From Macrostomum lignano (Eukaryota), in contig NIVC01004039.1 of assembly GCA_002269645.1 (NCBI GenBank), forward strand, positions 55,803-119,802: a stretch of DNA of 64,000 nucleotides. Reading direction: 5' to 3'. A program made the position numbers and the translations under genes. A model generated the notes under the pieces. The model saw nothing but the letters and a program-made list of their open reading frames with translations. It searched no databases and was not told the DNA's origin. Shown one piece after another: positions 14,112 through 60,404 of this stretch (within the stretch, counting starts at the first letter, position 1; each line of letters starts with the position of its first letter).

Positions 14112-17100
14112 ATGAGATCGCCTTTGCTGCTGGTAATTGTATCGCTTCTTCTACTAGGAGAAGCCGCAGAAATTGCCCGGGCTCTGCGCCTCGCCGTGCT
14201 GGCTGAGCCGGGGCTGCTGCAGCCGGGTCTGGTGCAGCGAGTCGTCGACAGGCGGGTCAACCAGAACCCGCTGCTGTTCCCCGGCCTCGGCGAGTCCAAC
14301 CCGCTCACCTGCCAGCTCGTGTCCGCTGACGACTCCGTCTTGGCTGTGCAACAGAGTGAGACATCTATGCTGTTGTTTATCTATGGCCAGTGCATCAATG
14401 CACTCTGTTTATCAATGGCCAGTGCATTGGTGCACTCTGTTTATCTATGGCCAGTGCATCAATGCACTCTGTTTATCTATGGCCAGTGCATTAGTGCACT
14501 CTGTTTATCTATGGCCAGTGCATCAATGCACTCTGTTTATCTATGGCCAGTGCATCAATGCACTCTGTTTATCTATGGCCAGTGCATCAGTGCACTCTGT
14601 TTATCTATGGCCAGTGAATTAGTGCATTCTGATTATCTGTGGCCAGTGCATCAGTGCATTCTGTTTATCTATGGCCAGTGCATCAGTGCACTCTATCTAT
14701 CTATGGCCAGTGCATCAGTGCACTCTGTTTATCTATGGCCAGTGCATCAATGCACTCTGTTTATCTATGGCCAGTGCATTGGTGCACTCTGTTTATCTAT
14801 GGCCAGTGCATCAGTGCATTCTGTTTATCTATGGCCAGTGCATCAGTGCACTCTGTTTATCTATGGCCAGTGTATCAGTGCACTCTGTTTATCTATGGCC
14901 AGTGCATCAGTGCACTCTGTTTATCTATGGCCAGTGCATCAGTGCACTCTGTTTATCTATGGCCAGTGCATCAGTGCATTCTGTTTATCTATGGCCAGTG
15001 CATCAGTGCACTCTGTTTATCTATGGCCAGTGCATCAGTGCACTCTGTTTATCTATGGCCAGTGCATCAGTGCACTCTGTTTATCTATGGCCAGTGCATC
15101 AGTGCACTCTATTTATCTATGGCCAGTGCATCAGTGCACTCTAATACACTAGCTGTAAAACAATAACATTAAAATCCTATACTTAAATAATTACCTTGCA
15201 GTCTGTCGGTCCAGCGGATTCCACGGCCTCGTGGCAGTCGGCAGCTGCTCTCTGGGCAGCTCGGTGCACCGGCTGGCCAAGTCCTTGCGAGTGCCCGCCA
15301 TTTTTGTGCCAGCGGGGGAGCTGTGCCTACTGGACACTGCTGAGTCTGGTATGTGAGCTGTGCCTGCTGCATGGACACTGCTGAGTCTGGTATGTGAGCT
15401 GTGCCAGCTGGACACTGCAGAGTCTGGTATGTGAGCTGTGCCAGCTGGACACTGCTGAGTCTGGTATGTGAGCTGTGCCTGCTGCATGGACACTGCAGAG
15501 TCTGGTATGTGAGCTGTGCCTGCTGGACACTGCAGAGTCTGGTATGTGAGCTGTGCCAGCTGGACACTGCAGAGTCTGGTATGTGAGCTGTGCCAGCTGG
15601 ACACTGCAGAGTCTGGTATGTGAGCTGTGCCTGCTGCATGGACACTGCAGAGTCTGGTATGTGAGCTGTGCCTGCTGCATGGACACTGCAGAGTCTGGTA
15701 TGTGAGCTGTGCGTGAGCTGTGCGTGAGCTGTGCGTGAGCTGTGCGTGAGCTGTGCGTGAGCTGTGCGTGAGCTGTGCGTGAGCTGTGCGTGAGCTGTGC
15801 GTGAGCTGTGCGTGAGCTGTGCGTGAGCTGTGCGTGAGCTGTGCGTGAGCTGTGCGTGAGCTGTGCGTGAGCTGTGCGTGAGCTGTGCGTGAGCTGTGCG
15901 TGAGCTGTTGTCCAACTCATTCATCCTGCAGAGTTTGCTTTTGTTGGCGATGATCACCCTAGCAGACTTTTGTCTGCAGTCGTCGCCCTGCTGAAGTCGC
16001 ACTCAGCCAGCCTCGTGTCCGTGTTCTATGACAGTCACCAGGGTATGCGGCTGCTCTAAAATTGCTTTTTTGTTATAATAGACTTAAACCATTGCTAATT
16101 GATACGTCGTAAACGACAAACTTCAGATGAGAGCCAGATGCAGTCGCTCCAGTCGCAGCTGTCAGCCTCAGGCATTGCGGCTGTCAGCTTTCAAACTGAT
16201 GCTCCAACGTCAAACATATCGAGAATTCTGGCTGACTCCATTAAAAAGAAAATCCGATTCAATCTGATCTTTGCCAGGCCCGATGCTGTCTACAGTCTGA
16301 TAAGACAGGTGCTGTTTCACACTAGCTTTCAATTTCCAAATTTTTGGCCTTTATATTTTGCTTGCGAAGCAAATTTTGCAGGCGGTTCAAGCGGAGGCAG
16401 TGCAGGCCCACTACTACTGGCTGGCTCTGGACGAGGGGCTGCGGCCGAACCAGCTGCTGCGGCTGCTGCCACCCAACGTGTCGGCCAACGTCATGCTGGT
16501 CCGCGGCTCGAGTCACGGCCTGCTGGATCCGCAGCGGCTGCGGCTGAGCGGCGGCTGTCCCGACGCTCTGCGAGCCGTCATGGGCGACTCGTGCGACCCA
16601 GGAGCTGTCAGCGTGAGCATCTGAGCATTCTCATTGAGCCTTGGCATCTGAGCATTCTCATTGAGTCTTGGCATCTGAGCATTCTCATTGAGCCTTGGCA
16701 TCTGAGCATTCTCATTGAGTCTTGGCATCTGAGCATTCTCATTGAGCCTTGGCATCTGAGCATTCTCATTGAGTCTTGGCATCTGAGCATTCTCATTGAG
16801 CCTTGGCATTCCGGCCATTGTGACCCGTGGTGGGCAAGCCATTGTGACCCGTGGTGGGCAAGCCATTGTGACCCGTGGTGGGCAAGCCATTGTGACCCGT
16901 GGTGGGCAAGCCATTGTGACCCGTGGTGGGCAAGCCATTGTGACCCGTGGTGGGCAAGCCATTGTGACCGTGGTGGGCAAGCCATTGTGACCCGTGGTGG
17001 GCAAGCCATTGGGACCCGTGGTGGGCAAGCCATTGTGACCCACGTGGGCAAGCCATTGTGACCCGTGGTGGGCAAGCCATTGGGACCCGTGGTGGGCAAG

Positions 17101-20100
17101 CCATTGGGACCCGTGGTGGGCAAGCCATTGTGACCCGTGGTGGGCAAGCCATTGTGACCCGTGGTGGGCAAGCCATTGTGACCCGTGGTGGGCAAGCCAT
17201 TGTGACCCGTGGTGGGCAAGCCATTGTGACCCGTGGTGGGCAAGCCATTGGGACCCGTGGTGGGCAAGCCATTGGGACCCGTGGTGGGCAAGCCATTGGG
17301 ACCCGTGGTGGGCAAGCCATTGTGACCCGTGGTGGGCAAGCCATTGTGACCCGTGGTGGGCAAGTCATTGTGACCCCTCAGCCTCCGTAGCTGCAGATGC
17401 GCTCCCAATCGCACTCAGTGAACTCATTTTCTCATCGAACATTCCAGTCTGTTGAGCTGCGCACCATTGACGCAGTTCTGGCCATGACGAGGGCTGTCCA
17501 CAGCGTCACAGGCGGCTACACCAGCTCGAGCTCCACCAACGCCAGCTGCAACGGCGCCACTCGAGCATGGCCTGATGGAGCACTGGCAGCTCGCGCTCTC
17601 GCTAAGGTTGTGAGCGACTTGTCTGCATTCCAACACATTCACATCCGGCATCACTGCTGGGAAACTTTTCATTGGAATTCCAGACCACGGACTTCAACAC
17701 ACTCGGCTCTCTGATTTCCTACAATGGCACCACGAGGCACTTCACCAGCTACATCGAGGCGGTGTCCACCTTCCACGCCTTCTACACGAGTCCGCTGAGG
17801 TACATCGAGAGCGCCAGGTACCACCCCGACAACGCCTCGCTCAGCGTCTCGTTCGTCTACAAAGACAGGCGACTGGCTTTCCCGAACACCTTCGTGGACT
17901 TCAAGAACCGAACTCTGCGAGTCTGCGCTCCGGATGTAGGAGCTAAATTTCAACTGTCACACTGAAGTATTTGGATTTCATACTTGAAAACTATACCTAT
18001 TATTGTCTTGAATTTCAGGTTCGTCCCTACGTAATCTACGACGAGAACACTTACGGAAAGGTCACCGGCCACGCTGAGGATGTGCTCAATATTGTGCGAG
18101 AAAATCTGAACTTCTCGTTAGTGACTCGAAAGCGTGAAAATTCTTAGTCAATGCCACCAGTTTTAATGCAACTAACATATTGCACCGAGGGGGGGGGGCG
18201 TAGCCCAGCGGTAGCGCAGATGCTCTGGTGTCCAGCGACCCAGGCTCGATTCCAAGTGCAGTCGCATTAATTTGGGGCTGAATTGGAATTTCGGCTTGGC
18301 TCTGCTCGTGCAATTAACGGCTTTGAGAGCCAACCCCCCAAGGCGCAGTGAAGTGTACATGCCTAACGATAAATAAAGTTAGGGCCGCTGTACACTCCTG
18401 TGTGAGTGTGTGCCTGCGTACGTATCCGCGCGCTTGTGTGCCTGCTCAGGGGAGTCGGCGGAATGGGCAGTAATGCCTCTCGCCGGTTGTGTGCCTATGT
18501 CGCTTAAAAAACATATTGCACCAATATTGCAGAACCATCGTTCTGAAGCCGCCAGACGGGCAGTTCGGGGCGCCAATCAATGGCACGCAGCGCTTCTCCG
18601 GCTGCATTGGAGAGCTGCAGAATGGCGTGAGTTGCTTCTTGAAGATGGCTTAAGAGTCGCGACGGCTTCAAGTTGTTTGATAAATCTAGCTGTGAGTTTC
18701 AGTTTGTTCATCCGATTTCTCTTCCAGAAAGCAGACTTGGCAGTCGTTTTCGCTGTCACCAATCTGCGCTATGCCGTCGTGGACTACTTGGACGACTACC
18801 TGTACTCATCCAACAACATCCTAGTCCGCATACCACCCCCTGCCAGCAAAATCTGGAACGTGTTCACGCCGATGACGCTGCAAGTTTGGCTGCTGCTGGC
18901 TGCCTCCATCTTCATCGTGCCCTTCATCATCTACCTGCTGGCCTTGTTCAGCCCCTTCTCCGCTTGGAACCTGAAACTGAGCTTCGCTTTCGCCGACGAG
19001 GTCTGGTACAAGGAATACCTGTGGTCCACCATCGGCAGTTTCTTGCAACAGGGTCAGGACTTTTATCCATTCGCAATGTCGCCCAGAACCGTGATGGTGT
19101 TCTGGTGGCTGCTCACCGTTATTATATTTGGTGCATACACTGGAGACCTGACTGCTCACCTGGCTACATCAGTCAGCAGTTTGACTATTAGGACTCTGGA
19201 AGACCTGGTGTCCATGCCTTACTACACTGCTTTAGTACCAAGGGGAACCAACATTCACACGGCGATCGACATGGCTACGTCGGGACCGATGTTCCAGCTG
19301 AAGTCCATGACTGTGCTGGTGCAATCGCACGAGGACTGCGCTAGGAAGGTGAGGACTGTGCGCCCCGAATTTGGAATTCTTAGAACAGAAAGGTGCAACG
19401 AATCGGTGAAATTATGCGCCTTCAATTTTCAACTTTCAGCTGCTGGCCTCAACCAATCCGTACACTGTGTGCATCGCGGATCAGAAGTCCAATCTGTACT
19501 TTGCTAATCAATTCTGCGAAAAAATGTACGTGGCTGACGAGTATTTTAACTTCTACTATCTGGCGTGGCCTGTGCCCAAGGATGCGTTCTATGCTGACGC
19601 CATGAACTTAATGTAAGCCGCTAATCCTGACAGTCATGCTCACAGTGCTCTGATGTATTAGCTTTGGAATGGGCGTGTAACCTCGCGGCTAAGCTGCTGG
19701 TTTTGCTAAGGATTACGAGTGGACTATTATCTGCTGTACTGATTTGAGATTTGGTAGAATCGCTGCCACCAGGCTTCCTGCTTCCCTAATCCTATTATTT
19801 TGAGACAAAGGAAGAACTCAGGAAATCCAAATTATTTGACAAAAGTTTATACTTCAAAAAAATAGAACAGCATGCAATGGTTATTGTGCGAGAGTTTTAG
19901 GCATTGACTACCTGGTAGTGTACTGTTTTAGGCATCGACTACCACCAACAGTTTTACGTATCTCCCAATATTTCCCCGCCTCTTACCTATTCCTACTTGA
20001 GACTACGCAAGTCCGCGAGCGAACGAAAGATCTGCTTACCCAAGCCCCAAACTGCTCTATTCTTCTAAGGAATCCCGGAAACCTGCGATTTTCCCCGGCT

Positions 20101-20474
20101 CTAATTACTTTCCCAAACCTAAACTACTGACAGTAGGCAAAAAGCATATCTGCTTCGCTACTAATTCCCATTCCTAAAATACTGCCCTACTACAGCTTTA
20201 TTAATTGACGCGAAATTTACCTTCTAGAATTCGTCGGGCTAAAGAGAACGGCCTCGTTGACATGCTCCGGTTGAAGTACTTCCCAACTAGCAGCTCAGAG
20301 TGCTCAAGTGCACAGGGAGGGATATCGGATGCTGAGCCAATTAACCTGGAGGGCATCGGCGGATCCTGCTTGGTGCCAGGAGTCCTGTACTTAATTGGAC
20401 TGCTCATCCTGCTGCTTGAGCTCTTCTGGACCGCCTGTCTGAACAAGGACCCGCTGCAGTGCGTCTTGTTCTGA
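14112..20474 (+). CDS. Ionotropic glutamate receptor family subunit, paralog A; 12 exons (14112-14355, 15202-15348, 15932-16042, 16127-16308, 16382-16612, 17391-17606, 17684-17935, 18019-18116, 18533-18626, 18728-19348, 19440-19612, 20228-20474), about 871 aa
   Basis: Signal peptide, amino-terminal domain (DAVLAMTRAV..SC...AWPDG), S1 (PY..G..ED.L...LNFS, PPDGQFG..GCIGEL, ADLAV..TNLRYAVVDY), M1, pore FLQQG, M3 AYTGDLTAHL, S2, M4. All junctions are GT-AG and phase-consistent; exon lengths sum to 2616 nt with no internal stop seen. Confidence 0.93.
14375..15140. repeat. 32-bp minisatellite in iGluR-A intron 1 (TGCACTCTGTTTATCTATGGCCAGTGCATCAG)n
   Basis: About 24 units; the same array is in paralog B intron 1. 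Confidence 0.97.
15318..15910. repeat. 37/41-bp array duplicating the exon 2 end and donor (10 copies), then (GTGAGCTGTGC)n, about 18-19 copies
   Basis: Unit GAGCTGTGCC..GGACACTGCAGAGTCTG|GTATGT; the first unit is the real end of exon 2. Confidence 0.95.
16620..17375. repeat. Compound array in iGluR-A intron 5: 27-bp (CATCTGAGCATTCTCATTGAGCCTTGG) then 24-bp (GGGCAAGCCATTGTGACCCGTGGT)
   Basis: Direct periodicity; a shorter copy is in paralog B at 31345-31685. Confidence 0.96.
18187..18509 (+). mobile_element. tRNA-derived SINE, copy 1, with 13-bp TSD
   Basis: A box GTAGCCCAGCGG, B box GGCTCGATTCC, short A tail, TSD AACATATTGCACC at 18174-18186 and 18510-18522. A homologous copy lies on the minus strand at about 38845-39153. 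Confidence 0.9.
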
Positions 20475-21012
20475 TGGTTGTTTTGAGCGTTTGAAAATTT
20501 GTTAACTTGCGGTTTTAATCGCAACTTTAAGATGCTTAAGTTTTTTCTTGATTTAATTGTGAAGCACTAATTAGGCATAAAGTTAAGACATTGGAACTTT
20601 TGTGTCACCAGAGATCATGTAACTTGTTATACTGAAGTGATCAGCTGACAATTTACCATTAACTGATTTCTCACAGTATTGCACTGGCACCTATTCAACT
20701 TACTTCGTAGGGTCCCGATATTATCACGTACGCTCGTACACAAATAAAAACCAGTTGCAAGAAAAAATGCACAAACTGTAAGTCCTTATATTAAAATATT
20801 ATACCCAATTCACATTGGCGTACTAATCATGAAGTAAGGAATTATGTAAATTACTGTATATAGGGTTTGAAAGCCTACCAAAGTATAATATATTCATATA
20901 AAAAATAATTTCTTTATTTCCAGTCAAACCTAATCTGGATTTGCAAGTTAATCTATTTAGGTTTCAGGCTAAATTCATTTGGGCTCAGGTGGCAACATTT
21001 TTTTTCTAGGGC

Positions 21013-23080
<2,068 letters not shown>

Positions 23081-23698: not shown

Positions 23699-26600
23699 TC
23701 ATTCATTCACGGCTTCTAGCAAAATCAGGTTCTCAACCGGCCAGCGAATCAAGCATCTCCTGGGTCCGCGGCCTGGCTTTTGCGCGACTCGAACTGTTGC
23801 CAATTTTACTGCTCCGTCTCGTCCCGGATGCACCGCCTCGATAATCCCAATACACCAGGTGAGCCTCGGTTGGCCAGCTTCGCCTTTCACCAGGACGATG
23901 TCACCGATCGTTGCCTCTCGGATCTCGCCGTGCTTAGGATTGAGCCGATGTTCACGCAGGCTGGTCAGATACTGCCGCTCCCAGCAGTCCCAGAAGGTGT
24001 GAAGTCTGGTGCGCATTCGCTTCAGCATTTTTGGCAACGGTAGCAGAAGATCCGGCGCGCAACTAGAAGTAGGTTCCGCTGTCAGCCGCTGCAACACCAG
24101 GAAGTGTGTTGCGGTGTCAGAACTTCTCCTTCGGGCTCGGCATCCACGTAGAGCAGAGGGCGGCTGTTGAGCACCGCCTCCACCCCATGAGCAGTGTCAG
24201 CAGTTCGTCCAGTGTTAGACTTGCATTCAGAAGGGTTTTGCGCAGCGCCAGTTTGATGTCCTTAATCAGTCGCTCCTAGAAGCCGCCTTTCCAGGGTGCG
24301 CGTTCGGTGATGAACTGCCAGGTAATCTTCCGAGCGGCGCAGGACTCCTGAACCTTTTGACTCTCCGATGCTTGTAAATCCGCGCGGCTTTGACGAATGT
24401 CTTAGCGTTATCGCTGATGAGACTAGGGATACCTCTCCTTGCACAGAATCTCCTTAGGGCTCTTAAGAAGGTCTCAGTTGTTAGATCTTTCACCAGTTCT
24501 AGATGAAGCGCTCGCGTTGCTGCGCAGGTAAACACTAAAATTTAGCCCTTCTCGACAGCAGTGTCTTCTCTTAGTTTGACCGGACCACATTAGTCGAGCC
24601 CGCTCCACTCAAATGCTCTCATTGCTTTCACGCGAGATTCTGGCAACGCAGGAACTTGCTTCACAGCGAACGGGAGTCCCTAACGGGAGAACTGGAACGG
24701 GAGAACGGGAGAACTGCAGACGACGCATTTTCCAAGAATTGCCTTCACTCGCTGCCTGCCACGGATCAGCCAAAACTTCTCTCGCAGTTTGCAAAGGGTG
24801 CTTGGAACTCCCCGGTGCAGAACTTTGCTGTGCGCGTCTCGGATGAGGAGAACTTCTAGATGAGTCTAGTTCGGGATGAGGATGGGGCAATCAGCAGCTG
24901 CACCAACGTTTGATTCTCTCAATCGACCCCGACTTCGGAGCAGACCTTTGCTGTCGATGAAGAGATTCAGCTGCTTTGCGAGGTCCGTAGATGCTGTCGA
25001 CCTTTCAAAGTGAGCAATCTCAGCAGGGAAACTCCTTCGTTGTACATCTTTCAGCCAATCAGGACCATGCCACCAGCTGGATCAGTCTTCAGCTTGTCGA
25101 CCGAAGTGCCGCGAGATGCAACATCGGCAGGGTTCTCACTGCCTGGCACGTGTCGCCATGATTCCTCCGGAAGCAGCCGGCGGATCTCAGAGACTCGGTT
25201 GTGAACAAAGAGCTTCCATGGCTTGTGCTGTCGGATCCAGTACAGAGTATCGGCACTATCTGTCCAGCAGAAAACTTGGCGGACTTGAGGATGTTGACTC
25301 AGGGCTGAAATCACTAGTCTGGCCAGTATCAGGGCACCTAATAGTTCCAGCCGAGGAACCGACAGGGTCGATAGTGGAGCCACTCTGGCCTTCGCCGTCA
25401 CCAGGGTACAGCTGACAGAACCGTCGATGTACTGAACTCGTAGGTAGAGACAAGCCGCGTAGCGCTTTGCGGATGCGTCACAGAAGCCATGCAGCTGCAT
25501 CTCTTGGACCACCTGTGTCGCGAAAAGCACCAGCCGCGGTACCTGGAATCGTGCTTTCAGCATGTCCTGCAGCCACTTCTGCCACAGCTGTTCAGTCGGC
25601 TCATCCAGCGGGCAATCCCAAGCAACTTTGTGAGCACAGAGTGTCTGAAACATTGTTTTCGGCCAAGTCAGTATTGGAACTAGGAAGCCGAGAGGATCAT
25701 AGACACGTGCCAGAAGCTGTAGCATGACTCGCTTGGATTGCGTAGCTCTGAGTAACTCCTCTGCTGGTGAGAACCGAAGCACGAACACGTCCGATCCGGT
25801 TTCCCAGTGCAACCCAAGGACCTTCGACAACACGCCCTCCTCACTCAATGAGGCGGAGGAATAGCTCCCCTGGTCCTCCGTCATTCTGAGAGTCTCTACT
25901 GACAGGGCTGGAGCCAGAATGTCCTGGTCTGTAGCGCTAGCTCGAACTGCGGACTAAACCGCTTTACTGTTGGACTGCCAATGGCGTAGATTCATACCTG
26001 CCTGGCGGAAGACGTGACGGGATTTTTGGATGAGTTCCATGGCTTGCCGTTCGCTTGCACACCCAGAGATATGTCCACATAGATCTCTCCACGAACTGCG
26101 CATCCTGGTCCCGATGAGATGCTAAATGATGTTGAATGACCGTCTTCAGAATCCCAGGTGAGCAGGTGAGTCGGAATACCAAAGCGGCGTAACGAAGAAC
26201 AACGAGTGGCGATTCAGCTCGACTTGGATCCTGTGGCCAGAGAAACCGCAGTGAATCCCGATCTTCTTCAGCAATGCGAATCTGAAGAAACGCCTCAATA
26301 TCAGCTGTAAGAGCGATCGGATGAAACCGGAATGCTTGAAGAAGACGAGGAATCTCGACCAACGAACACGATCCAGTCTCCAGACACTCATTCAAGAACG
26401 AGCTCCACCGATCTCGCTTAGCACTGGCATCGAAAACTACTCTGACCTTCGTCGACTCTGCTTCAGGACGAATCACTGCTCGGTGAGGCAAGTAGTGGAC
26501 AAGATGGTGCGTGCCGTCGGGAACCTCATCCACTATTCCAGCTTCTTTCTGGCTCATCAGAATGTGGTGGTATTCCTGCAGCAGTGCGGGTTCACGGCGC

Positions 26601-27250
26601 AGTTTGCTCAGGTTGATCTGAAGCCTCTTGAATGCCACGTCGAAGTTGTCCGGTAAGGTCAATTCCTCCTCGGGAAGCCTCCACGGCAGCTTGACTGAGT
26701 AGCGCCCATCCTGGAATTGACTGCCTAATTCGAAAGGCCGATGCTCAGGTTCGGATGCGCTGGTAATGCCAATGCCTTCAAGCGTCCAAAACGTCTCCAT
26801 GGAACAGTGGTCAAGGCCTTTGAAGCACTTGCTCTTTTTTGTCTTCCAGTCCTCCTGCCGAAATGGCGTCGGACAAGGAGCCACACAGGAGCCACCAAAG
26901 CTGACTAGCTACCCCAACCAGCCCGGTGCTGATTTCAGAACGATCCACCTGTCCTGTGACAAGGTCATCGAACTGGTCAGCTCCTATGAGGATGCTGATC
27001 TCTGGATGCTGCTCGCTGCCGATGTCCCAGTCTGCAGCCATCTGGTGAAATCAGTACAGCTCCCGCAGTAGGAAGAACTACTGTCTGGGCCTTGGTGACC
27101 ATCGCCATAGTCTTTACTTCGTGACTCTTGACACCCTGCGCGGCCGACTGTTCGACTTTCTTCTTCTCTGAACCCGCCGTATCGAAGGTGCAATAGGCGT
27201 CTTGTCTGCCGGTCTCGGTGGCTGTTCCACTGGCGCAGCGCAGACTGGGA
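23699..27250 (-). pseudogene. pol: Disrupted BEL/Pao pol (PR remnant-RT-RH-IN)
   Basis: ORFs 26811..27041, 25964..26884, 25051..25884, 24266..24535 and 23699..24097 are consecutive pol pieces in different frames. Confidence 0.92.
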
Positions 27251-29143: not shown

Positions 29144-32100
29144 ATGCTGGCGCTGCTAATGTTGTCGCTTCTTTTACTAGGAGAAGCCGCAGAAATTGCC
29201 CGGGCTCTGCGCCTCGCGGTGCTGGCTGAGCCGGGGCTGCTGCAGCCGGGTCTGGTGCAGCGAGTCGTCGACAGGCGGGTCAACCAGAACCCGCTGCTGT
29301 TCCCCGGCCTCGGCGAGTCCAATCCGCTCACCAGCCAGCTCGTGTCCGCTGACGACTCCGTCTTGGCTGTGCAACAGAGTGAGACATCTATGCTGTTGTT
29401 TATCTATGGCCAGTGCATCAATGCACTCTGTTTATCTATGGCCACTGCATCAGTGCATTCTGTTTATCTATGGCTACTGCATCAGTGCACTCTGTTTATC
29501 TATGGCCAGTGCATCAGTGCACTCTGTTTATCTATGGCCAGTGAATTAGTGCATTCTGTTTATCTATGGCCAGTGCATCAGTGCACTCTGTTTATCTATG
29601 GCCAGTGCATCAGTGCATTCTGTTTATCTATGGCCAGTGAATTAGTGCACTCTGTTTATCTATGGCCAGTGCATCAGTGCATTCTTTTTATCTATGGCCA
29701 CTGCATCAGTGCACTCTGTTTATCTATGGCCAGTGCATCAATGCACTCTATCTATCTATGGCCAGTGCATCAGTGCACTCTATCTATCTATGGCCAGTGC
29801 ATCAGTGCACTCTGTTTATCTATGGCCAGTGCATCAGTGCATTCTGTTTATCTATGGCCAGTGAATTAGTGCACTCTGTTTATCTATGGCCAGTGCATCA
29901 GTGCATTCTTTTTATCTATGGCCAGTGCATCAGTGCACTCTGTTTATCTATGGCCAGTGAATTAGTGCATTCTGTTTATCTATGGCCAGTGCATCAGTGC
30001 ACTCTGTTTATCAATGGCCAGTGAATTAGTGCACTCTGTTTATCTATGGCCAGTGAATTAGTGCACTCTAATACACTAGCTGTAAAACAATAACATTAAA
30101 ATCCTATACTTAATTAATTACCTTGCAGTCTGTCGGTCCAGCGGATTCCACGGCCTCGTGGCAGTCGGCAGCTGCTCTCTGGGCAGCTCGGTGCACCGGC
30201 TGGCCAAGTCCTTGCGAGTGCCCGCCATTTTTGTGCCAGCGGGGGAGCTGTGCCAGCTGGACACTGCTGAGTCTGGTATGTGAGCTGTGCCTGCTGCATG
30301 GACACTGCAGAGTCTGGTATGTGAGCTGTGCCTGCTGCATGGACACTGCTGAGTCTGGTATGTGAGCTGTGCCTGCTGCATGGACACTGCAGAGTCTGGT
30401 ATGTGAGCTGTGCCTGCTGCATGGACACTGCAGAGTCTGGTATGTGAGCTGTGCCTGCTGCATGGACACTGCAGAGTCTGGTATGTGAGCTGTGAGCTGT
30501 GTAGCCAGGTGCATCAAGACCCGTCCGCCAACCCAATTGCAGAGTTCTCATTCGTTGGCGAAGACCATCCCATCGGCCGCATTGGGTCTATCGAAGCCTT
30601 GCTTCGGTCAAAGTCAGCCAGTGTCGTGTCGATATTTTTTGACAATCATCAGAGTGAGCACAGGCGTTTTGAACTCAACTCTGCCGTTCATCACTTTTTT
30701 TAAATGCCTAGGTAATACAAAAAATTGAAAAAAAAACACTTCAGATGAGCAGCTCATTCGGTCCCTGCACAACCAGCTGGCAGATGCGAGCATTGCGACA
30801 GTCAGCTTTCAGCTTGACACCATTGGAGTGAACCTGTCAAGGATTTTGAAAGATTCCATCAAGAAGAAAGTGAAGTTCAATGTAGTACTGGCAGAGCCGG
30901 ATGCAGTTTACAGTTTAATTGAACAGGTAAATTCGACTTCTTTGACAGACTTGTGCCTGAAACTCTGTGCCTTAGGGGTCGGCCATCGTGGTTGTGAATT
31001 GCAAAGGTAGGCGACACGTGACAATTTTTTAACTTCATGATGTATCACCTGTACTGTTGTGGTTTTGCAGGCGGTTCAAGCGGAGGCAGTGCAGGCCCAC
31101 TACTACTGGCTGGCTCTGGACGAGGGGCTGCGGCCGAACCAGCTGCTGCGGCTGCTGCCACCCAACGTGTCGGCCAACGTCATGCTGGTCCGCGGCTCGA
31201 GTCACGGCCTGCTGGATCCGCAGCGGCTGCGGCTGAGCGGCGGCTGTCCCGACGCTCTGCGAGCCGTCATGGGCGACTCGTGCGACCCAGGAGCTGTCAG
31301 CGTGAGCACTCTGGCTGTTGGGACAGCAACTTCATGAGCCTTGGCGTCTGAGCATTCTCATTGAGCCTTGGCATCTGAGCATTCTCATTGAGCCTTGGCA
31401 TCTGAGCATTCTCATTGAGCCTTGGTATTCCGGCCATTGTGACCCGTGGTGGGCAAGCCATTGGGACCCGTGGTGGGCAAGCCATTGGGACCCGTGGTGG
31501 GCAAGCCATTGTTACCCGTGGTGGGCAAGCCATTGTGACCCGTGGTGGGCAAGCCATTGTGACCCGTGGTGGGCAAGCCATTGTGACCCGTGGTGGGCAA
31601 GCCATTGTGACCCGTGGTGGGCAAGCCATTGTGACCCGTGGTGGGCAAGCCATTGTGACCCGTGGTGGGCAAGCCATTGTGACCCCTCAGCCTCCGTAGC
31701 TGCAGATGCGCTCCCAATCGCACTCAGTGAACTCATTTTCTCATCGAACATTCCAGTCTGTTGAGCTGCGCACCATTGACGCAGTTCTGGCCATGACGAG
31801 GGCTTTCCACAGCGTCACAGGCGGCTACACCAGCTCGAGCTCCACCAACGCCAGCTGCAACGGCGCCACTCGAGCATGGCCTGATGGCGCACTGGCAGCT
31901 CGCGCTCTCGCTAAGGTTGTGAGCGACTTGTCTGCATTCCAACACATTCACATCCGGCATCACTGCTGGGAAACTTTTCATTGGAATTCCAGACCACGGA
32001 CTTCAACACACTCGGCTCCCTGATTTCCTACAATGGCACCACGAGGCACTTCACCAGCTACATCGAGGCGGTGTCCACCTTCCACGCCTTCTACACGAGT

Positions 32101-35100
32101 CCGCTGAGGTACATCGAGAGCGCCAGGTACCACCCCGACAACGCCTCGCTCAGCGTCTCGTTCGTCTACAAAGACAGGCGACTGGCTTTCCCGAACACCT
32201 TCGTGGACTTCAAGAACCGAACTCTCCGAGTCTGCGCTCCGGATGTAAGTCGAGAAGGCTTCCTATTAAGTTTGTAGGAGTATTGCTCACCTAATTTAAG
32301 ACTTTAACAGTAGAACAACCTAGAGGGGGAAGAATTCCCCCTGACAATTTTTTGTCAACGCAGGCACACGAAATTCAAGTCTACGGACTAACTTTCTGTT
32401 GCGCACCTTCTCAAACAAGAATCAAGTCGCCAGCCCTCCAGACCGTCGAGATATTCGACCATTCTGCCAGAAGGTCGGAATTTTTCCATAAGCGCTACTG
32501 TTCTCAGTACACCCCAGTGCGCCAAACAGCACTGCGCCAAGCCTCTAAATTTCATCATCACGTCGAAAACATGTGTCTGCATCAGCTCTGACTTCGTTGG
32601 TCACTGGCCTTCACCCTAGCGGAGCTTCTGGACCTTCACCCTGGCGGTGGGCAAGCCTCAACTGCTGGACATCCTCAGCTAGTCTCTCAAGAATTCCGTC
32701 ATCACCTCGATGTTGAATTTCGTGTGCCTGCGTTGCTCCCCCCGTCCGGCGGAAAATGGCTTGGTTTTCCTACTGTTGATCCGGCTTTCCAGTTCCGGCC
32801 GTACACCGTATTCGATAACAGGACGGACGGCAAGGTCACTGGCCACTCTGAAGATCTGCTTAACGTGCTGAGGATCGACCTTAATTTCTCGTGAGCGCCG
32901 AATAATACTTGAAAATCATGATGCTTTCGGATAAAAGAGAGTTAATGAACCGCTTTTGTTGATCTGAATCTGTAGCACCATCGTTTTAAAGCCGCCTGAT
33001 GGCGTCTTCGGCACTCCGATCAATGGAACTCAGCAATTTTCCGGCTGCATCGGAGAGCTGCAGAAGGGAGTGAGTCGTGCTGCGTGCTTCTATTAATGCT
33101 TTTTTTTCCAAAGTAAATTTAAACTGGGGATTTTTAATACAGTCTTTAATTAGTCTTTGTTGTCTTTGTTGTTCCTGTCTATGACCAATCCTCAGCTGCT
33201 CCTGTCTATGACCAGTCCTAACCTGCTCCTGTCTATGACCAGTCCTAACCTGCTCCTGTCTATGACCAGTCCTAACCTGCTCCTGTCTATGACCAGTCCT
33301 CACCTGCTCCTGTCTATGACCAGTCCTAACCTGCTCCTGTCTATGACCAGTCCTAACCTGCTCCTGTCTATGACCAGCCCTCACCTGCTCCTGTCTATGA
33401 CCAGTCCTCACCTGCTCCTGTCTATGACCAGTCCTCACCTGCTCCTGTCTATGATCAGTCCTCACCTGCTCCTGTCTATGACCAGTCCTAACCTTGCTGA
33501 ACTCGAACCGTTGCACTTCTCACAAGAATTCGGATCTGGCCATGCTGTTTGCCATCACGAACGTTCGCTATGCCGTGGTGGACTACTTGGACGACTACCT
33601 GTACTCATCCAACAACATCCTGGTCCGCATACCGCCTCCTGCCAGCAAAATCTGGAACGTGTTCACGCCGATGACTCCGCAAGTTTGGCTGCTGCTGGCT
33701 GCCTCCATCTTCATCGTGCCCTTCATCATCTACCTGTTGGCCTTGTTCAGCCCTTTCTCCGCTTATAACCTGAAACTGAGCTTTGGTTTTGCCGACGAAA
33801 TCTGGTACAAGGAGCACCTCTGGTCCACCATTGGCAGTTTCTTGCAACAGGGTCAGGACTTTTATCCATTCGCAATGTCTGCCCGAATCGTGATGGCTTT
33901 CTGGTGGCTGCTCACCGTTATTATATTTGGAGCCTACACCGGTGACCTTGCGGCTCACCTGGCTACATCAGTCAGCAGTCTGCCGATCCAGACTCTGCAG
34001 GACCTGGTGTCCATGCCTTACTACACTGCTTTAGTACCAAGGGGAACCAACATTCAGACAGCGATCGACATGGCTACGTCGGGACCGATGTTCCAGCTGA
34101 AGTCCATGACTGTGCTGGTGCAATCGCACGAGGACTGCGCTAGGAAGGTGAGGCTCGAAAAGGCAGACTTGTTTTGTTGGCAGCACGAGAGTTGCCCGCC
34201 AGGAGCTGAATAGAGATTTTCGGCAGGCGTAGCCATGTACTCACCGCCCAGCAGCTGGTTGCAGCCAGCTTCTAGCAGGAAGCAGTTACAGGCACCTTTG
34301 TAGTTTGCCCCTCTGTAGCTGGCGCCCCCTCTGTAGCTGGCGCCCCCTCTGTTGCTGGCGCCCCCTCTGTAGCTGACGCCCCTCTGTAGCTGGCGCCCCC
34401 TCTGTTGCTGGCGCCCCCTCTGTAGCTGGCGCCCCCTCTGTAGCTGACGCCCCTCTGTAGCTGGCGCCCCCTCTGTTGCTGGCGCCCCCTCTGTAGCTGG
34501 CGCCCCCTCTGTTGCTGGCGCCCCCTCTGTTGCTGGCGCCCCCTCTGTAGCTGGCGCCCCCTCTCTTGCTGGCGCCCCCTCTGTAGCTGACGCCCCTCTG
34601 TAGCTGGCGCCCCCTCTCTTGCTGGCGCCCCCTCTCTTGCTGGCGCCCCCTAACCCAATCTACACATCCTATCACCCCAGCTACACCCTAGAACCTCAGT
34701 TGCATTCCCAGTAACCCAGCTACACACCCCAGTAACCCAGCTACACACCCAGAACCCCAGCTACATGTACATAACCCAGTACCCCAGAGCTCTACATACC
34801 CTTAGTAGACACTCAGTGTCTCGCGTACAAAATTTACGCGGGAAAATCTCGGTGGACAATTCTTGTACATTTAAATCCCGTTTGGTTTCGTGTAGAGTCT
34901 CAGTCTTCAAAATATTTCCTGAATTTTCAGCTGTTAGCAACAAACAATCCGTACACTGTGTGCATCGCGGATCAGATGTCCAATCTGTACTTTGCTAACC
35001 AATTCTGCGAAAAAGTTTACGTGGCTAAGGAATATTTTAACTTTTACTATCTGGCTTGGACGGTGCCACAGGATGCATTTTACATCGATGCTATGAATTT

Positions 35101-36826
35101 TGTGTAAGTTTATTAATTGTTTATGAGATTCATGATAGACTGTAGATCTTTGAGTCGTTAAGCGTATGGCACACTAATTCGAAATGCTCCCAGATCCTCA
35201 GGCCTCTCCAGCTTTTCGCGCTAACTTAAGGGTTCTGCTGATACGCACTTCAATTCCTCAAGCAAGCCCACACTGTACATTCGTTTCTAAATTTAGGGCT
35301 TCTGCTGATACACGCTTCAACTCCAACCCCCTCAAGCAAGCCCACACTGTACATTCGTTTCTAAATTTAGGGCTTCTGCTGATACACGCTTCAACTCCAA
35401 CCCCCTCAAGCGAGCCCACACTGTACATTCGTTTCTAAATTCAGGGCTTCTGCTGATACACGCTTCAACTCCAACCCCCTCAAGCGAGCCCACACTGTAC
35501 ATTCGTTTCTAAATTCAGGGCTTCTGCTGATACACGCTTCAACTCCAACCCTTTCAAGCTAGCCCACACTGTACATTCGTTTCTAAATTTAGGGCTTCTG
35601 CTGATACACGCTTCAACTCCAACCCCCTCAAGCGAGCCCACACTGTATATTCGTTTCTAAATTTAGGGCTTCTGCTGATACACGCTTCAACTCCAACCCC
35701 CTCAAGCTAGCCCACACTGTACATTCGTTTCTAAATTTAGGGCTTCTGCTGACACACGCTTCAACTCCAACCCCCTCAAGCTAGCCCACACTGTACATTC
35801 GTTTCTAAATTTAGGGCTTCTGCTGATACACACGCTTCAACTCCAACCCTTTCAAGCTAGCCCACACTGTACATTCGTTTCTAAATTCAGGGCTTCTACT
35901 GATACACGCTTCAACTCCAGCCCCCTCAAGCGAGCCCACACTGTACATTCGTTTCTAAATTTAGGGCTTCTGCTGACACACGCTTCAACTCCAACCCCCT
36001 CAAGCTAGCCCACACTGTACATTCGTTTCTAAATTTAGGGCTTCTGCTGACACACGCTTCAACTCCAACCCCCTCAAGCGAGCCCACACTGTACATTCGT
36101 TTCTAAATTTAGGGCTTCTGCTGATACACACGCTTCAACTCCAACCCCCTCAAGCTAGCCCACACTGTACATTCGTTTCTAAATTTAGGGCTTCTGCTGA
36201 CACACGCTTCAACTCCAACCCCCTCAAGCGAGCCCACACTGTACATTCGTTTCTAAATTTAGGGCTTCTGCTGATACACGCTTCAACTCCAACCCCCTCA
36301 AGCGAGCCCACACTGTACATTCGTTTCTAAATTTAGGGCTTCTGCTGATACACACGCTTCAACTCCAACCCTTTCAAGCTAGCCCACACTGTACATTCGT
36401 TTCTAAATTTAGAGCAGTTTTTTTAGATTATATACTTTCTTTGTAGTTATACTCAAACAGTTCACTTAGTCTCATTTTACTGTGTATTCAATTTTTTTAT
36501 TCTCCTGTACTACCAGCCTTACTTAATCTAACTACACCGTTCTCATTCTTACTAAATTTCCTCTTGCTAAAACATCCACCAGCGTAAGTCGAGCCAGAGA
36601 GAACGGCCTCGTTGACATGCTCCGACTGAAGTACTTTCCAGCCAGCAGCTCAGAGTGCTCAAGCTCCCAGCTGATGGCGGAGGCTGACCCAATCAACCTG
36701 GATGGCATCGGCGGATCCTGTTTGGTGCCAGGAGTCCTGTATTTAATTGGAATGCTCATCCTGCTGCTTGAGCTCTTCTGGACCGCCTGTCTGAGCAAGG
36801 ACCCGCTGCAATGCATCATATTCTGA
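29144..36826 (+). CDS. Ionotropic glutamate receptor family subunit, paralog B; 12 exons (29144-29378, 30129-30275, 30543-30653, 30745-30926, 31071-31301, 31700-31915, 31993-32244, 32793-32890, 32976-33069, 33527-34147, 34931-35103, 36583-36826), about 867 aa
   Basis: Exons 2-11 have the same lengths and phases as in paralog A. Pore FLQQG, M3 AYTGDLAAHL, C-terminus KDPLQCIIF*. Exon 10 uses an AAG acceptor. Confidence 0.93.
29400..30065. repeat. 32-bp minisatellite in iGluR-B intron 1, same unit as 14375-15140
   Basis: Same unit; different copy number and variant order. Confidence 0.97.
30245..30500. repeat. 41-bp exon-end/donor array in iGluR-B intron 2, 6 donor copies
   Basis: GAGTCTG|GTATGT repeated six times. 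Confidence 0.95.
31345..31685. repeat. 27-bp + 24-bp compound array in iGluR-B intron 5
   Basis: Same units as 16620-17375, with fewer copies. Confidence 0.95.
32356..32735. mobile_element. 380-bp element bounded by perfect 23-bp inverted repeats (possible deleted DNA transposon)
   Basis: CAACGCAGGCACACGAAATTCAA at 32356-32378 and its reverse complement at 32713-32735; no TSD recognised; absent from the equivalent intron of paralog A. Confidence 0.55.
33165..33495. repeat. 27-bp minisatellite (TGTCTATGACCAGTCCTAACCTGCTCC)n in iGluR-B intron 9
   Basis: About 12 units. Confidence 0.96.
34310..34650. repeat. 18-bp minisatellite (CTGGCGCCCCCTCTGTAG)n in iGluR-B intron 10
   Basis: About 19 units with GTAG and GTTG variants. 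Confidence 0.96.
35210..36412. repeat. About 74-bp minisatellite in iGluR-B intron 11, about 16 copies
   Basis: Unit TTCGTTTCTAAATTTAGGGCTTCTGCTGATACACGCTTCAACTCCAACCCCCTCAAGCGAGCCCACACTGTACA. Confidence 0.96.
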
Positions 36827-37039
36827 CTTTCTATTGATAACAATGTCTATTCAATGCCACCCATAATTATTGAATGCACCGCATGTAAGAACAATGCCCC
36901 ATGTTCAAATCATGGCCACACTTTACTACTTGCTAAGCGAAGTAGTCGCATCGCAAACAACTCTATTGCAAACTCAATAAAGTTCTATCTACACTTTTAA
37001 CGGCCTCATTATCGCCAGCTGTCGTTTGGACCCTCTCTA

Positions 37040-59591: not shown

Positions 59592-60404
59592 TTACACGGT
59601 GCTGTCGCCAAACGGGCCACCAGACCGAGCCGTGCTGGCCTTGTAGTCTCCGCTAGTCGGATCATAATAACTGCCCGGTCCCTTGGCCACAGTGGACGGG
59701 CCAGGCAGACCGGACAGTCCCTTGTCCTCCTGGTCGGCCAGCAGGTAGTCCAGCTCGTCCTGGTCCAGGTAGCGAATCACAATGAATGCCACGGTGAACA
59801 GGCTGGCAAAGTTGGCCACGCAGGCGAGGCCATAGGAGAAGCCCAGCCTATTGTGGTCCGGCTTGGGCATCCATTCTCTATCCAGGCTTTTCACTCCGAC
59901 CAAGATTAGCTGAAGCAGCACGCAGAAGGTGGCGAGCGACTGGCAGATGGCGCAGACGCGCAGCAGTTTCCAGTCGGCGGGCTCTCGCAGTACCTGCTTG
60001 TTGATGAATCGGCGACAGGCCAGCCGGCTGATGATCAGAGTGGCCAGCAGCATGCAGATAAGGGCCACAATGCCCATCATTTGCACAGCGTAGAACCATG
60101 GCGGATTCAACCAGGATCGAATGTAATAGTACTCAGGATAGTAGATATACCAGCAGCCAGAATAGGCCTTGGACACGTAGTCCTCTGGGTGAATATAGTT
60201 ATTGAAGCACGACACCCACAGGCCTAGCCTAGTGAATGTACTTTTCATAGCTGGATCGGACTCAATCCAATAGGGCGTGACAAAGGCGACAAGGTAGAGT
60301 ATGGAGCCAACCACTGAGCTGACTAGGCTGCAGCGGAATGGCAGATCGCGCGGCAGCTGGCCATACTGGACTGGCTGCTGGTCATATCCTTGATAGCTGT
60401 GCAT
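59592..60404 (-). CDS. Claudin/PMP22 superfamily tetraspan, invertebrate septate-junction type (Megatrachea/pickel-like); single coding exon, 270 aa
   Basis: TPYWIES..RLGLWVSCF..YSGCWYIYYPEY..IRSWLNPPWF (W-GLW-C-C signature), four hydrophobic segments, C-terminal STV PDZ ligand. Acceptor CTCCAG lies just upstream of the ATG. Confidence 0.9.
   Translation of the reverse strand: MHSYQGYDQQPVQYGQLPRDLPFRCSLVSSVVGSILYLVAFVTPYWIESDPAMKSTFTRLGLWVSCFNNYIHPEDYVSKAYSGCWYIYYPEYYYIRSWLNPPWFYAVQMMGIVALICMLLATLIISRLACRRFINKQVLREPADWKLLRVCAICQSLATFCVLLQLILVGVKSLDREWMPKPDHNRLGFSYGLACVANFASLFTVAFIVIRYLDQDELDYLLADQEDKGLSGLPGPSTVAKGPGSYYDPTSGDYKASTARSGGPFGDSTV

Follow-up and report, generated by a model that had tools for sequence, protein, structure and literature searches.

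The stretch of Macrostomum lignano DNA analysed here, called the window below, spans 64,000 nucleotides (GenBank assembly GCA_002269645.1, contig NIVC01004039.1, positions 55,803 to 119,802 of the forward strand; all coordinates count from its first letter). It encodes two tandem ionotropic glutamate receptor (iGluR) genes, paralogs A and B, whose very short C-terminal tails end in a Cys followed by two hydrophobic residues and a Phe. A preliminary description of the same DNA had read the ending of paralog A as a Cys-aliphatic-aliphatic-X (CaaX) box that could be prenylated. Comparison with related sequences indicates that selection has maintained a C-terminal motif specific to this receptor family, of which the ending QCVLF is one local version, and we tentatively interpret the motif as a free hydrophobic C-terminal signal. 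The features of paralog A are the following.

14112..20474, + strand: full coding span of iGluR paralog A, about 12-13 exons
14112-~14355, ~15198-15320, ~15919-16042, 16127-16308, 16382-16612, + strand: upstream exons of paralog A, approximate, first part
17448-17606, 17684-17935, 18019-18116, 18533-18626, + strand: upstream exons of paralog A, approximate, second part
18728..19348, + strand: exon with the end of S1, M1, the M2 pore loop, M3 (AYTGDLTAHL vs SYTANLAAF) and the start of S2
19440..19612, + strand: penultimate coding exon (S2 lobe)
20228..20474, + strand: last coding exon (end of S2, M4 and tail), acceptor ...ccttctag/A
20358..20429, + strand: M4 transmembrane helix GGSCLVPGVLYLIGLLILLLELFW, its end aligned with the M4 end of GluD1 (...LELWWNS)
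20430..20471, + strand: 14-residue tail TACLNKDPLQCVLF, holding P-L-Q-C-V-L-F and a juxtamembrane Cys
20436-20438, + strand: juxtamembrane Cys codon TGT (WTAC), restricted to paralogs A and B
20460..20471, + strand: CaaX-like last four codons, C-V-L-F, identical in database entries P0001, P0008, P0010 and P0011
20472..20474, + strand: TGA stop of paralog A, where the DNA similarity of A and B ends exactly
20743..20748, + strand: AATAAA poly(A) signal, 269 nt 3' of the stop

The signal-peptide exon of paralog A lies at 14112, and the exons of the amino-terminal domain are likewise found upstream within the window. The splice sites of the three exons 18728-19348, 19440-19612 and 20228-20474 are all canonical AG/GT, and the spliced product (346 residues) has 100% identity to the annotated M. 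lignano protein UniRef A0A1I8JJ64 (P0001), whose C-terminus is likewise QCVLF. Translation of 20199-20480 (+) gives ...GGSCLVPGVLYLIGLLILLLELFWTACLNKDPLQCVLF followed by the stop, and the final codons TGC GTC TTG TTC TGA (20460-20474) encode CVLF and the stop, so that the ending reported in the preliminary description is borne out; the segment singled out there, 20440-20474, covers (L)NKDPLQCVLF-stop. The tail had been put at about 13 residues: it is indeed short, and the exact count is 14. Between M4 and the Cys at position -4 from the C-terminus there are only 10 residues (TACLNKDPLQ).

Domain content and structural similarity identify the protein as a delta-like iGluR subunit, AKDF-type by domain architecture, in agreement with the earlier assignment to the iGluRs. 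P0001 matches the Pfam families PF10613 (Lig_chan-Glu_bd), PF00060 (Lig_chan) and PF00497 (SBP_bac_3), and a longer paralog (P0012) matches PF01094 (ANF_receptor), PF10613 and PF00060. Using PDB, we found the nearest solved structures to be GluD1, GluA1, GluA2 and GluA4 (E about 1e-32 to 1e-28). The flatworm proteins share with these the ANF_receptor, Lig_chan-Glu_bd and Lig_chan architecture, the QQG pore loop and the conserved Glu in M4, and differ from them in the M3 gate, in the very short tail and in being a clade found only in M. lignano. The end of M4 in GluD1 (...LELWWNS) aligned with ...LELFWTA in paralog A; from this alignment and the established topology of iGluRs we infer that the tail after M4 would be cytosolic. 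The canonical M3 gate SYTANLAAF is absent in A (19131-19160) and in B, which have AYTGDLTAHL instead. Most paralogs carry (A/T/S)(Y/F)TGDLTAHL in M3, including P0002-P0005 at the same position, whereas P0027 retains SAYTANLTAFL. The change points to altered gating in the clade, or to a function other than that of a channel.

Paralog B lies downstream on the same strand:

29144..36826, + strand: coding span of tandem paralog B, start approximate
36583..36826, + strand: last coding exon of paralog B, ending ...WTACLSKDPLQCIIF and the stop
36976..36981, + strand: AATAAA, 150 nt 3' of the paralog B stop

It has the same exon structure as paralog A and is 80-90% identical to it in the C-terminal half. 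Its final codons are TGC ATC ATA TTC TGA (36812-36826), giving the ending QCIIF-stop; relative to A, the two codons after the Cys have changed from GTC to ATC and from TTG to ATA, three base changes that leave both positions aliphatic. The DNA similarity between the two genes in this region starts exactly at the acceptor AG of the last exon and stops exactly at the stop codon, beyond which the sequences are unalignable. These limits, the AATAAA after both stops and the QCVLF ending common to all four near-identical database entries indicate that the stop of paralog A is a real gene end, and the stop at 20472 looks like the true C-terminus of an intact gene. An alternative is that 20472 is not the functional end, and that the GT at 20463 (TGC/GTCTTG) or another donor leads into a downstream exon and a longer tail. 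One database model, P0019 (UniRef A0A1I8HNV3), does leave the exon after ...KDPLQC via the GT of this Val codon. It proceeds, however, from M4 to an amino-terminal-domain exon that lies upstream in the window (17448-17651) and then to a second M1-M2 block, an impossible domain order that marks it as a scrambled chimera of tandem copies. Paralog B, moreover, has ATC at that position and so lacks a GT there, and the collapse of A/B similarity at the stop and the poly(A) signals beyond both stops also argue against a longer tail. Besides, five other models, drawn from two annotations, terminate at this stop. We regard splicing past the stop as very improbable and dropped a mis-called gene end as the principal explanation.

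The ending of paralog A recurs in modified form in other iGluRs of the same species. Eight distinct endings with Cys at -4 were found (CVLF, CIIF, CVVY, CIVY, CIIY, CFFY, CLIY and CVIY), and the six that end in Tyr belong to the following entries.

P0002, P0012, P0016 and P0044, ending ...HPLDCVVY
P0022, ending ...PPLDCIVY
P0003, ending ...RPLDCIIY
P0004 and P0018, ending ...QPLDCFFY
P0005, ending ...QPLDCLIY
P0175, ending ...QPLDCVIY

The stop after CVVY in P0002 was confirmed in an independent contig (NIVC01000845.1), which reads CCG CTC GAC TGC GTC GTC TAT TGA. Over the C-terminal 110 residues the Tyr-ending paralogs are 36-41% identical to A, and their tails after M4 are 14 residues long, as in A and B. 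The family motif can be written W-T-x-x-x-(K/R-rich)-P-L-[D/Q]-C-Phi-Phi-[Y/F]-COOH, where Phi is a hydrophobic residue. In a C-terminal alignment of five lineages the columns P, L and C are invariant, that is 3 of the last 7 positions compared with 21% overall, and the last three residues are hydrophobic throughout. Throughout the eight tails, V, I, L or F stands at the first position after the Cys (a1) and L, I, V or F at the second (a2); the terminal residue (X) is Tyr in six of them and Phe in A and B, and never Leu, Met or Ile. The juxtamembrane Cys of WTAC is peculiar to A and B, the other members of the family lacking it, so the idea of the preliminary description that a second, palmitoylated Cys helps to loop the tail back to the membrane was discarded as a family feature.

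Two members depart from the motif. P0027 ends in ...QPKDCVF, one residue shorter (13 residues after M4) and with the Cys at -3. P0007 ends in ...RQTQESADY, with TQESAD in place of PLDC-Phi-Phi; here the Cys is lost, and the tail length and the terminal Tyr are kept. Four further M. lignano entries (P0019, P0017, P0020 and P0021) are chimeric or fused iGluR models of tandem copies: P0017 joins two receptors, and P0020 and P0021 continue beyond M4 into low-complexity sequence.

An exhaustive profile search provided the background against which this ending can be judged. The 142 iGluR relatives outside the family include just two with Cys at -4, of which a single one (CLME) also has hydrophobic a1 and a2. 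Two hydrophobic residues end the sequence in 29 of the 142 relatives, none of which has Cys at -4; six of the 29 end in Phi-Tyr (e.g. ...HSLY, ...ANLY and ...ADLY). These 29 invertebrate iGluRs (~20%) include P0039, P0055, P0066, P0089, P0100 and P0128, and some of them are perhaps truncated models. Their endings hint that hydrophobic or aromatic C-termini are used more widely, and independently of a Cys, in this receptor group. Kept across paralogs that are only about 40% identical and set against a background of 2 in 142, the CaaX-like ending lies above chance, and on this basis a chance CaaX occurrence was rejected. The preliminary description had named a lack of this Cys in orthologues as an observation that would count against it; in the paralogs, to which the comparison is confined, the Cys at -4 is kept in eight distinct tails, all of them from M. 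lignano.

The motif and the family appear to be restricted to this species. A word-indexed search with the C-terminal half of A returned seven matches, all from M. lignano, and a search with a short 110-residue tail profile returned one match and was uninformative. No motif-bearing tails from outside M. lignano came out of the exhaustive profile search, which covered 1.84 billion representative proteins, and no family members outside this species were retrieved from the 1.84 billion representatives or from a set of 5.8 billion sequences; the last profile search added one further tail, CVIY. The best source-checked matches beyond M. lignano are mollusc 'GluD1-like' proteins (Haliotis and Pecten), whose tails are long and unrelated. 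Since every motif-bearing sequence comes from M. lignano, the survey of conservation is limited to paralogs. As far as the searches show, the P-L-D-C-Phi-Phi-Y/F tail is undescribed so far and confined to a species-specific expansion of delta-like iGluRs.

The reading we favour, and hold tentatively, is that the free hydrophobic/aromatic C-terminus is conserved as a signal for sorting or docking, of the PhiC or PDZ type, with the adjacent Cys most likely S-acylated. The selected element would be the free C-terminus itself, a peptide signal that some cytosolic protein recognises. Such a reader might be the Sec24 B site of the COPII coat, in PhiC-type export from the endoplasmic reticulum (ER), and/or a class II-type PDZ scaffold, and it would control the export and the surface or synaptic placement of the tetrameric channel. 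PhiC signals belong to cytoplasmic tails 10-15 residues long and consist of either a hydrophobic pair or a Val at the very C-terminus, and the Sec24 B site holds the terminal carboxylate together with the side chains and accommodates a Phe-Phe ending (PMC5464768). In ending and in tail length, all nine motif-bearing tails agree with this definition, including the DCVF of P0027; the qualifying pairs are LF, IF, VY, IY and FY, and VF in P0027. The eight tails with Cys at -4 also all have the hydrophobic residues of a class II PDZ ligand at p0 (F/Y) and p-2 (V/I/L/F), so that the PDZ fit already proposed in the preliminary description stays viable. A PhiC-type COPII signal for ER export, which was not raised there, appears to fit the anatomy of the tail at least as well. 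The Phe of A and B would then be a conservative replacement of the family's usual Tyr, and the match to the CaaX box of geranylgeranyltransferase type I (GGTase-I) a by-product of this replacement. The invariant Cys upstream of the hydrophobic end is a probable lipidation site, and S-acylation seems likelier there than prenylation, given that AMPA-type iGluRs are already known to be S-acylated at cysteines of their tails.

Several points weigh against a free C-terminal signal. Recognition of the PhiC or PDZ type leaves both the invariant Cys and the P-L-D block without an explanation, which makes it probable that the motif joins an element recognised at the terminus to a Cys open to modification. 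Among PDZ ligands, endings other than Tyr or Phe at p0 are commoner. The preferred PhiC residue is Val (PMC5464768), the register shift of P0027 is known from one fragmentary gene model, and all motif comparisons are between paralogs within one species. To these are added two observations that speak for prenylation: the Cys stands exactly at -4 with hydrophobic a1 and a2 in eight tails of paralogs that are about 40% identical, and one of the tails, CFFY, has an HM score of 4.70 (cutoff 3) in a yeast farnesyltransferase (FTase) screen (PMC10320760).

If the ending were prenylated, GGTase-I (or FTase) would add an isoprenoid at the Cys at -4, Rce1 and ICMT might trim and methylate the end, and the tail would loop to the inner leaflet. 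We consider this unlikely, though still deserving of serious attention. CVLF and CIIF, the endings of A and B, lie within the GGTase-I consensus Caa[L/F/I/M/V] (PMC11304957; PMC9141697), as the preliminary description had said of CVLF, and Tyr is reported as a weaker X that is still compatible with GGTase-I (PMC12609287, citing Hartman et al. 2005). In the yeast FTase screen most CXXX sequences were accepted unless a2 was D, E, K or R or X was K, P or R (PMC10320760); of the eight tails, the score compared here is that of CFFY. The human prostacyclin receptor, ending in -CSLC, offers a precedent (PMC3145543), and the low background of Cys at -4 in related iGluRs, given above, also favours prenylation. 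On the other side, Tyr, which the GGTase-I consensus does not include, closes six of the eight tails, and neither Met nor Leu closes any; Leu is the optimal X for GGTase-I (PMC11304957). Phe to Leu is a single-base change, yet Leu is never terminal in the family, and an exclusively aromatic end looks like the result of selection by a pocket for aromatic C-termini rather than by a prenyltransferase. The conserved P-L-D/Q upstream of the Cys is no requirement of prenyltransferases; P0027, with Cys at -3, breaks the CaaX spacing yet keeps the hydrophobic end; and P0007 has no Cys yet keeps the same tail length and terminal Tyr. Prenylated integral membrane proteins are rare, and our literature search found no prenylated iGluR, which matches what the preliminary description had said on this point. 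Soluble prenyltransferases are roughly 90 kDa in size. With only 10 residues from M4 to the Cys, access of such a large soluble enzyme to a membrane-held tetramer would be questionable. Of the CaaX interpretation, then, the sequence, the register of the Cys and, for A and B, the consensus fit stand, while the Tyr majority, the P-L-D/Q block, P0027 and the restriction of the second Cys to A and B argue against prenylation as the selected feature. We think it unlikely that the clade is constitutively isoprenylated at C-Phi-Phi-[F/Y], which would make its members the first prenylated iGluRs, with the tail pinned to the inner leaflet in competition with COPII or PDZ recognition and a possible S-acylated juxtamembrane Cys in A and B.

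The Cys may instead be palmitoylated by a membrane-bound DHHC enzyme while Phi-Phi-[Y/F] dips into the interface of the inner leaflet, forming a reversible pin that would regulate trafficking or gating with no prenyl group and no dedicated reader. This account jointly covers the invariant Cys, the hydrophobic a1, a2 and X, the interfacial aromatics and the register shift of P0027, needs no particular X residue, and has a precedent in the tail cysteines of AMPA receptors (GluA1 C811, GluA2 C836, GluA3 C841 and GluA4 C817; PMC7802216). It leaves unexplained both the conserved P-L-D and the exact C-terminal placement in all members, and S-acylation has no sequence rule to test against. We think such an anchor an unlikely explanation in itself; it is compatible with the favoured free C-terminal signal, and the two are not mutually exclusive. 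Finally, the ending may have no specific function, being inherited in a young species-specific expansion, with its likeness to CaaX arising by chance. The whole family is found only in M. lignano, whose genome is rich in recent duplicates (paralogs with several near-identical database entries each, and the tandem pair A and B), and P0007 has swapped PLDC-Phi-Phi for TQESAD, apparently without truncation. Yet paralogs only 36-41% identical to A share an invariant P, L and C and end in three hydrophobic residues, and the changes between A and B, V to I and L to I (the latter two bases), are conservative where the adjoining 3' untranslated region is unalignable. An ending without function is in our judgement quite improbable.

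Between A and B, at 23699-26884 on the reverse strand, are remnants of a Pao/BEL-type long terminal repeat (LTR) retrotransposon, in which Peptidase_A17 (E 5.5e-47), DUF5641 and an integrase core with a weak match are spread over several open reading frames (ORFs). Both genes have the same minisatellites in their introns, namely a 32-bp unit in the first intron (14374-15142 and 29397-30069) and a 24-bp unit in a later intron (16814-17376 and 31433-31685), and a (TAGT)n array of ~2 kb lies 3' of paralog A (21017-23080). Many of the long ORFs in the mechanical ORF list of the window are translations of the minisatellite or (TAGT)n repeats. At 59592-60404, on the reverse strand, an uninterrupted ORF of 270 residues with a PMP-22/EMP/MP20/Claudin_2 domain (E 4e-20) is probably the gene of a four-pass claudin-like membrane protein.

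The tail can be compared with several known systems. The human prostacyclin receptor (IP), which like the flatworm proteins spans the plasma membrane several times, carries the CaaX box -CSLC at its cytosolic C-terminus; it is farnesylated there and palmitoylated further upstream, and PDZK1 binds these four residues as a PDZ ligand (PMC3145543). IP thus represents the dual CaaX/PDZ use that the preliminary description had imagined. It differs in being a G-protein-coupled receptor with a C-tail of roughly 90 residues (constructs 299-386) and an FTase-type X, Cys (PMC3145543), whereas the flatworm protein is an iGluR with a 14-residue tail and Phe or Tyr as X; its prenylation has been demonstrated by experiment, whereas that of the flatworm tail would be a prediction from sequence. 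The small GTPase-like format C-aliphatic-aliphatic-Phe is shared with TC21/R-Ras2, which ends in CVIF, and with brain Cdc42 (CCIF). Both GTPases are soluble and depend on the lipid for reaching the membrane; the iGluR is itself a membrane-embedded protein, and most of its family ends in Tyr. Brain Cdc42 bears prenyl and palmitoyl groups at neighbouring cysteines (PMC9190017).

The PhiC signals of p24 proteins and ERGIC-53 (-FF, -LV and -VV) resemble the flatworm endings in that a hydrophobic pair ends a cytosolic tail of 10-15 residues (PMC5464768). Their carriers differ in being single-pass cargo receptors that prefer Val and have no conserved Cys or P-L-D alongside, and for the flatworm tails Sec24 is a candidate reader. 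The C-termini of vertebrate iGluRs are classical PDZ ligands, e.g. -SVKI of GluA2 (class II). In GluA2, too, the extreme C-terminus is a docking peptide with hydrophobic p0 and p-2; vertebrate tails have, however, at least 50 residues and an aliphatic end, whereas the flatworm tail has 14 residues and an aromatic end, and its PDZ partner is only hypothetical. The WTAC Cys of A and B, three residues past the Trp that ends M4, occupies a position that we take to be comparable to the palmitoylation site in the tails of AMPA receptors. In those receptors the cytosolic Cys near M4 (GluA1 C811 and equivalents) regulates trafficking (PMC7802216), whereas the Cys common to the flatworm family lies 10 residues further out, at -4 from the end.

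The C-tails of iGluRs govern assembly, export, synaptic anchoring and plasticity, functions for which vertebrate subunits use long tails, and this flatworm clade packs its whole cytosolic C-terminus into 14 residues with a conserved Cys-hydrophobic-hydrophobic-aromatic end. At present its role is a hypothesis at the level of sequence, drawn from one species, and several ordinary explanations are available. Ion-channel research already uses M. lignano as an established laboratory model (PMC3447372). Prenylation of the tail would give the superfamily its first isoprenylated ligand-gated ion channel and add a rare case of a polytopic membrane protein with a prenyl group, and the in vivo specificity of CaaX recognition would be widened to Tyr-terminal boxes. 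If instead the favoured PhiC- or PDZ-type signal is true, the clade would provide a compact and easily tested case of a minimal tail directing the trafficking of a channel.

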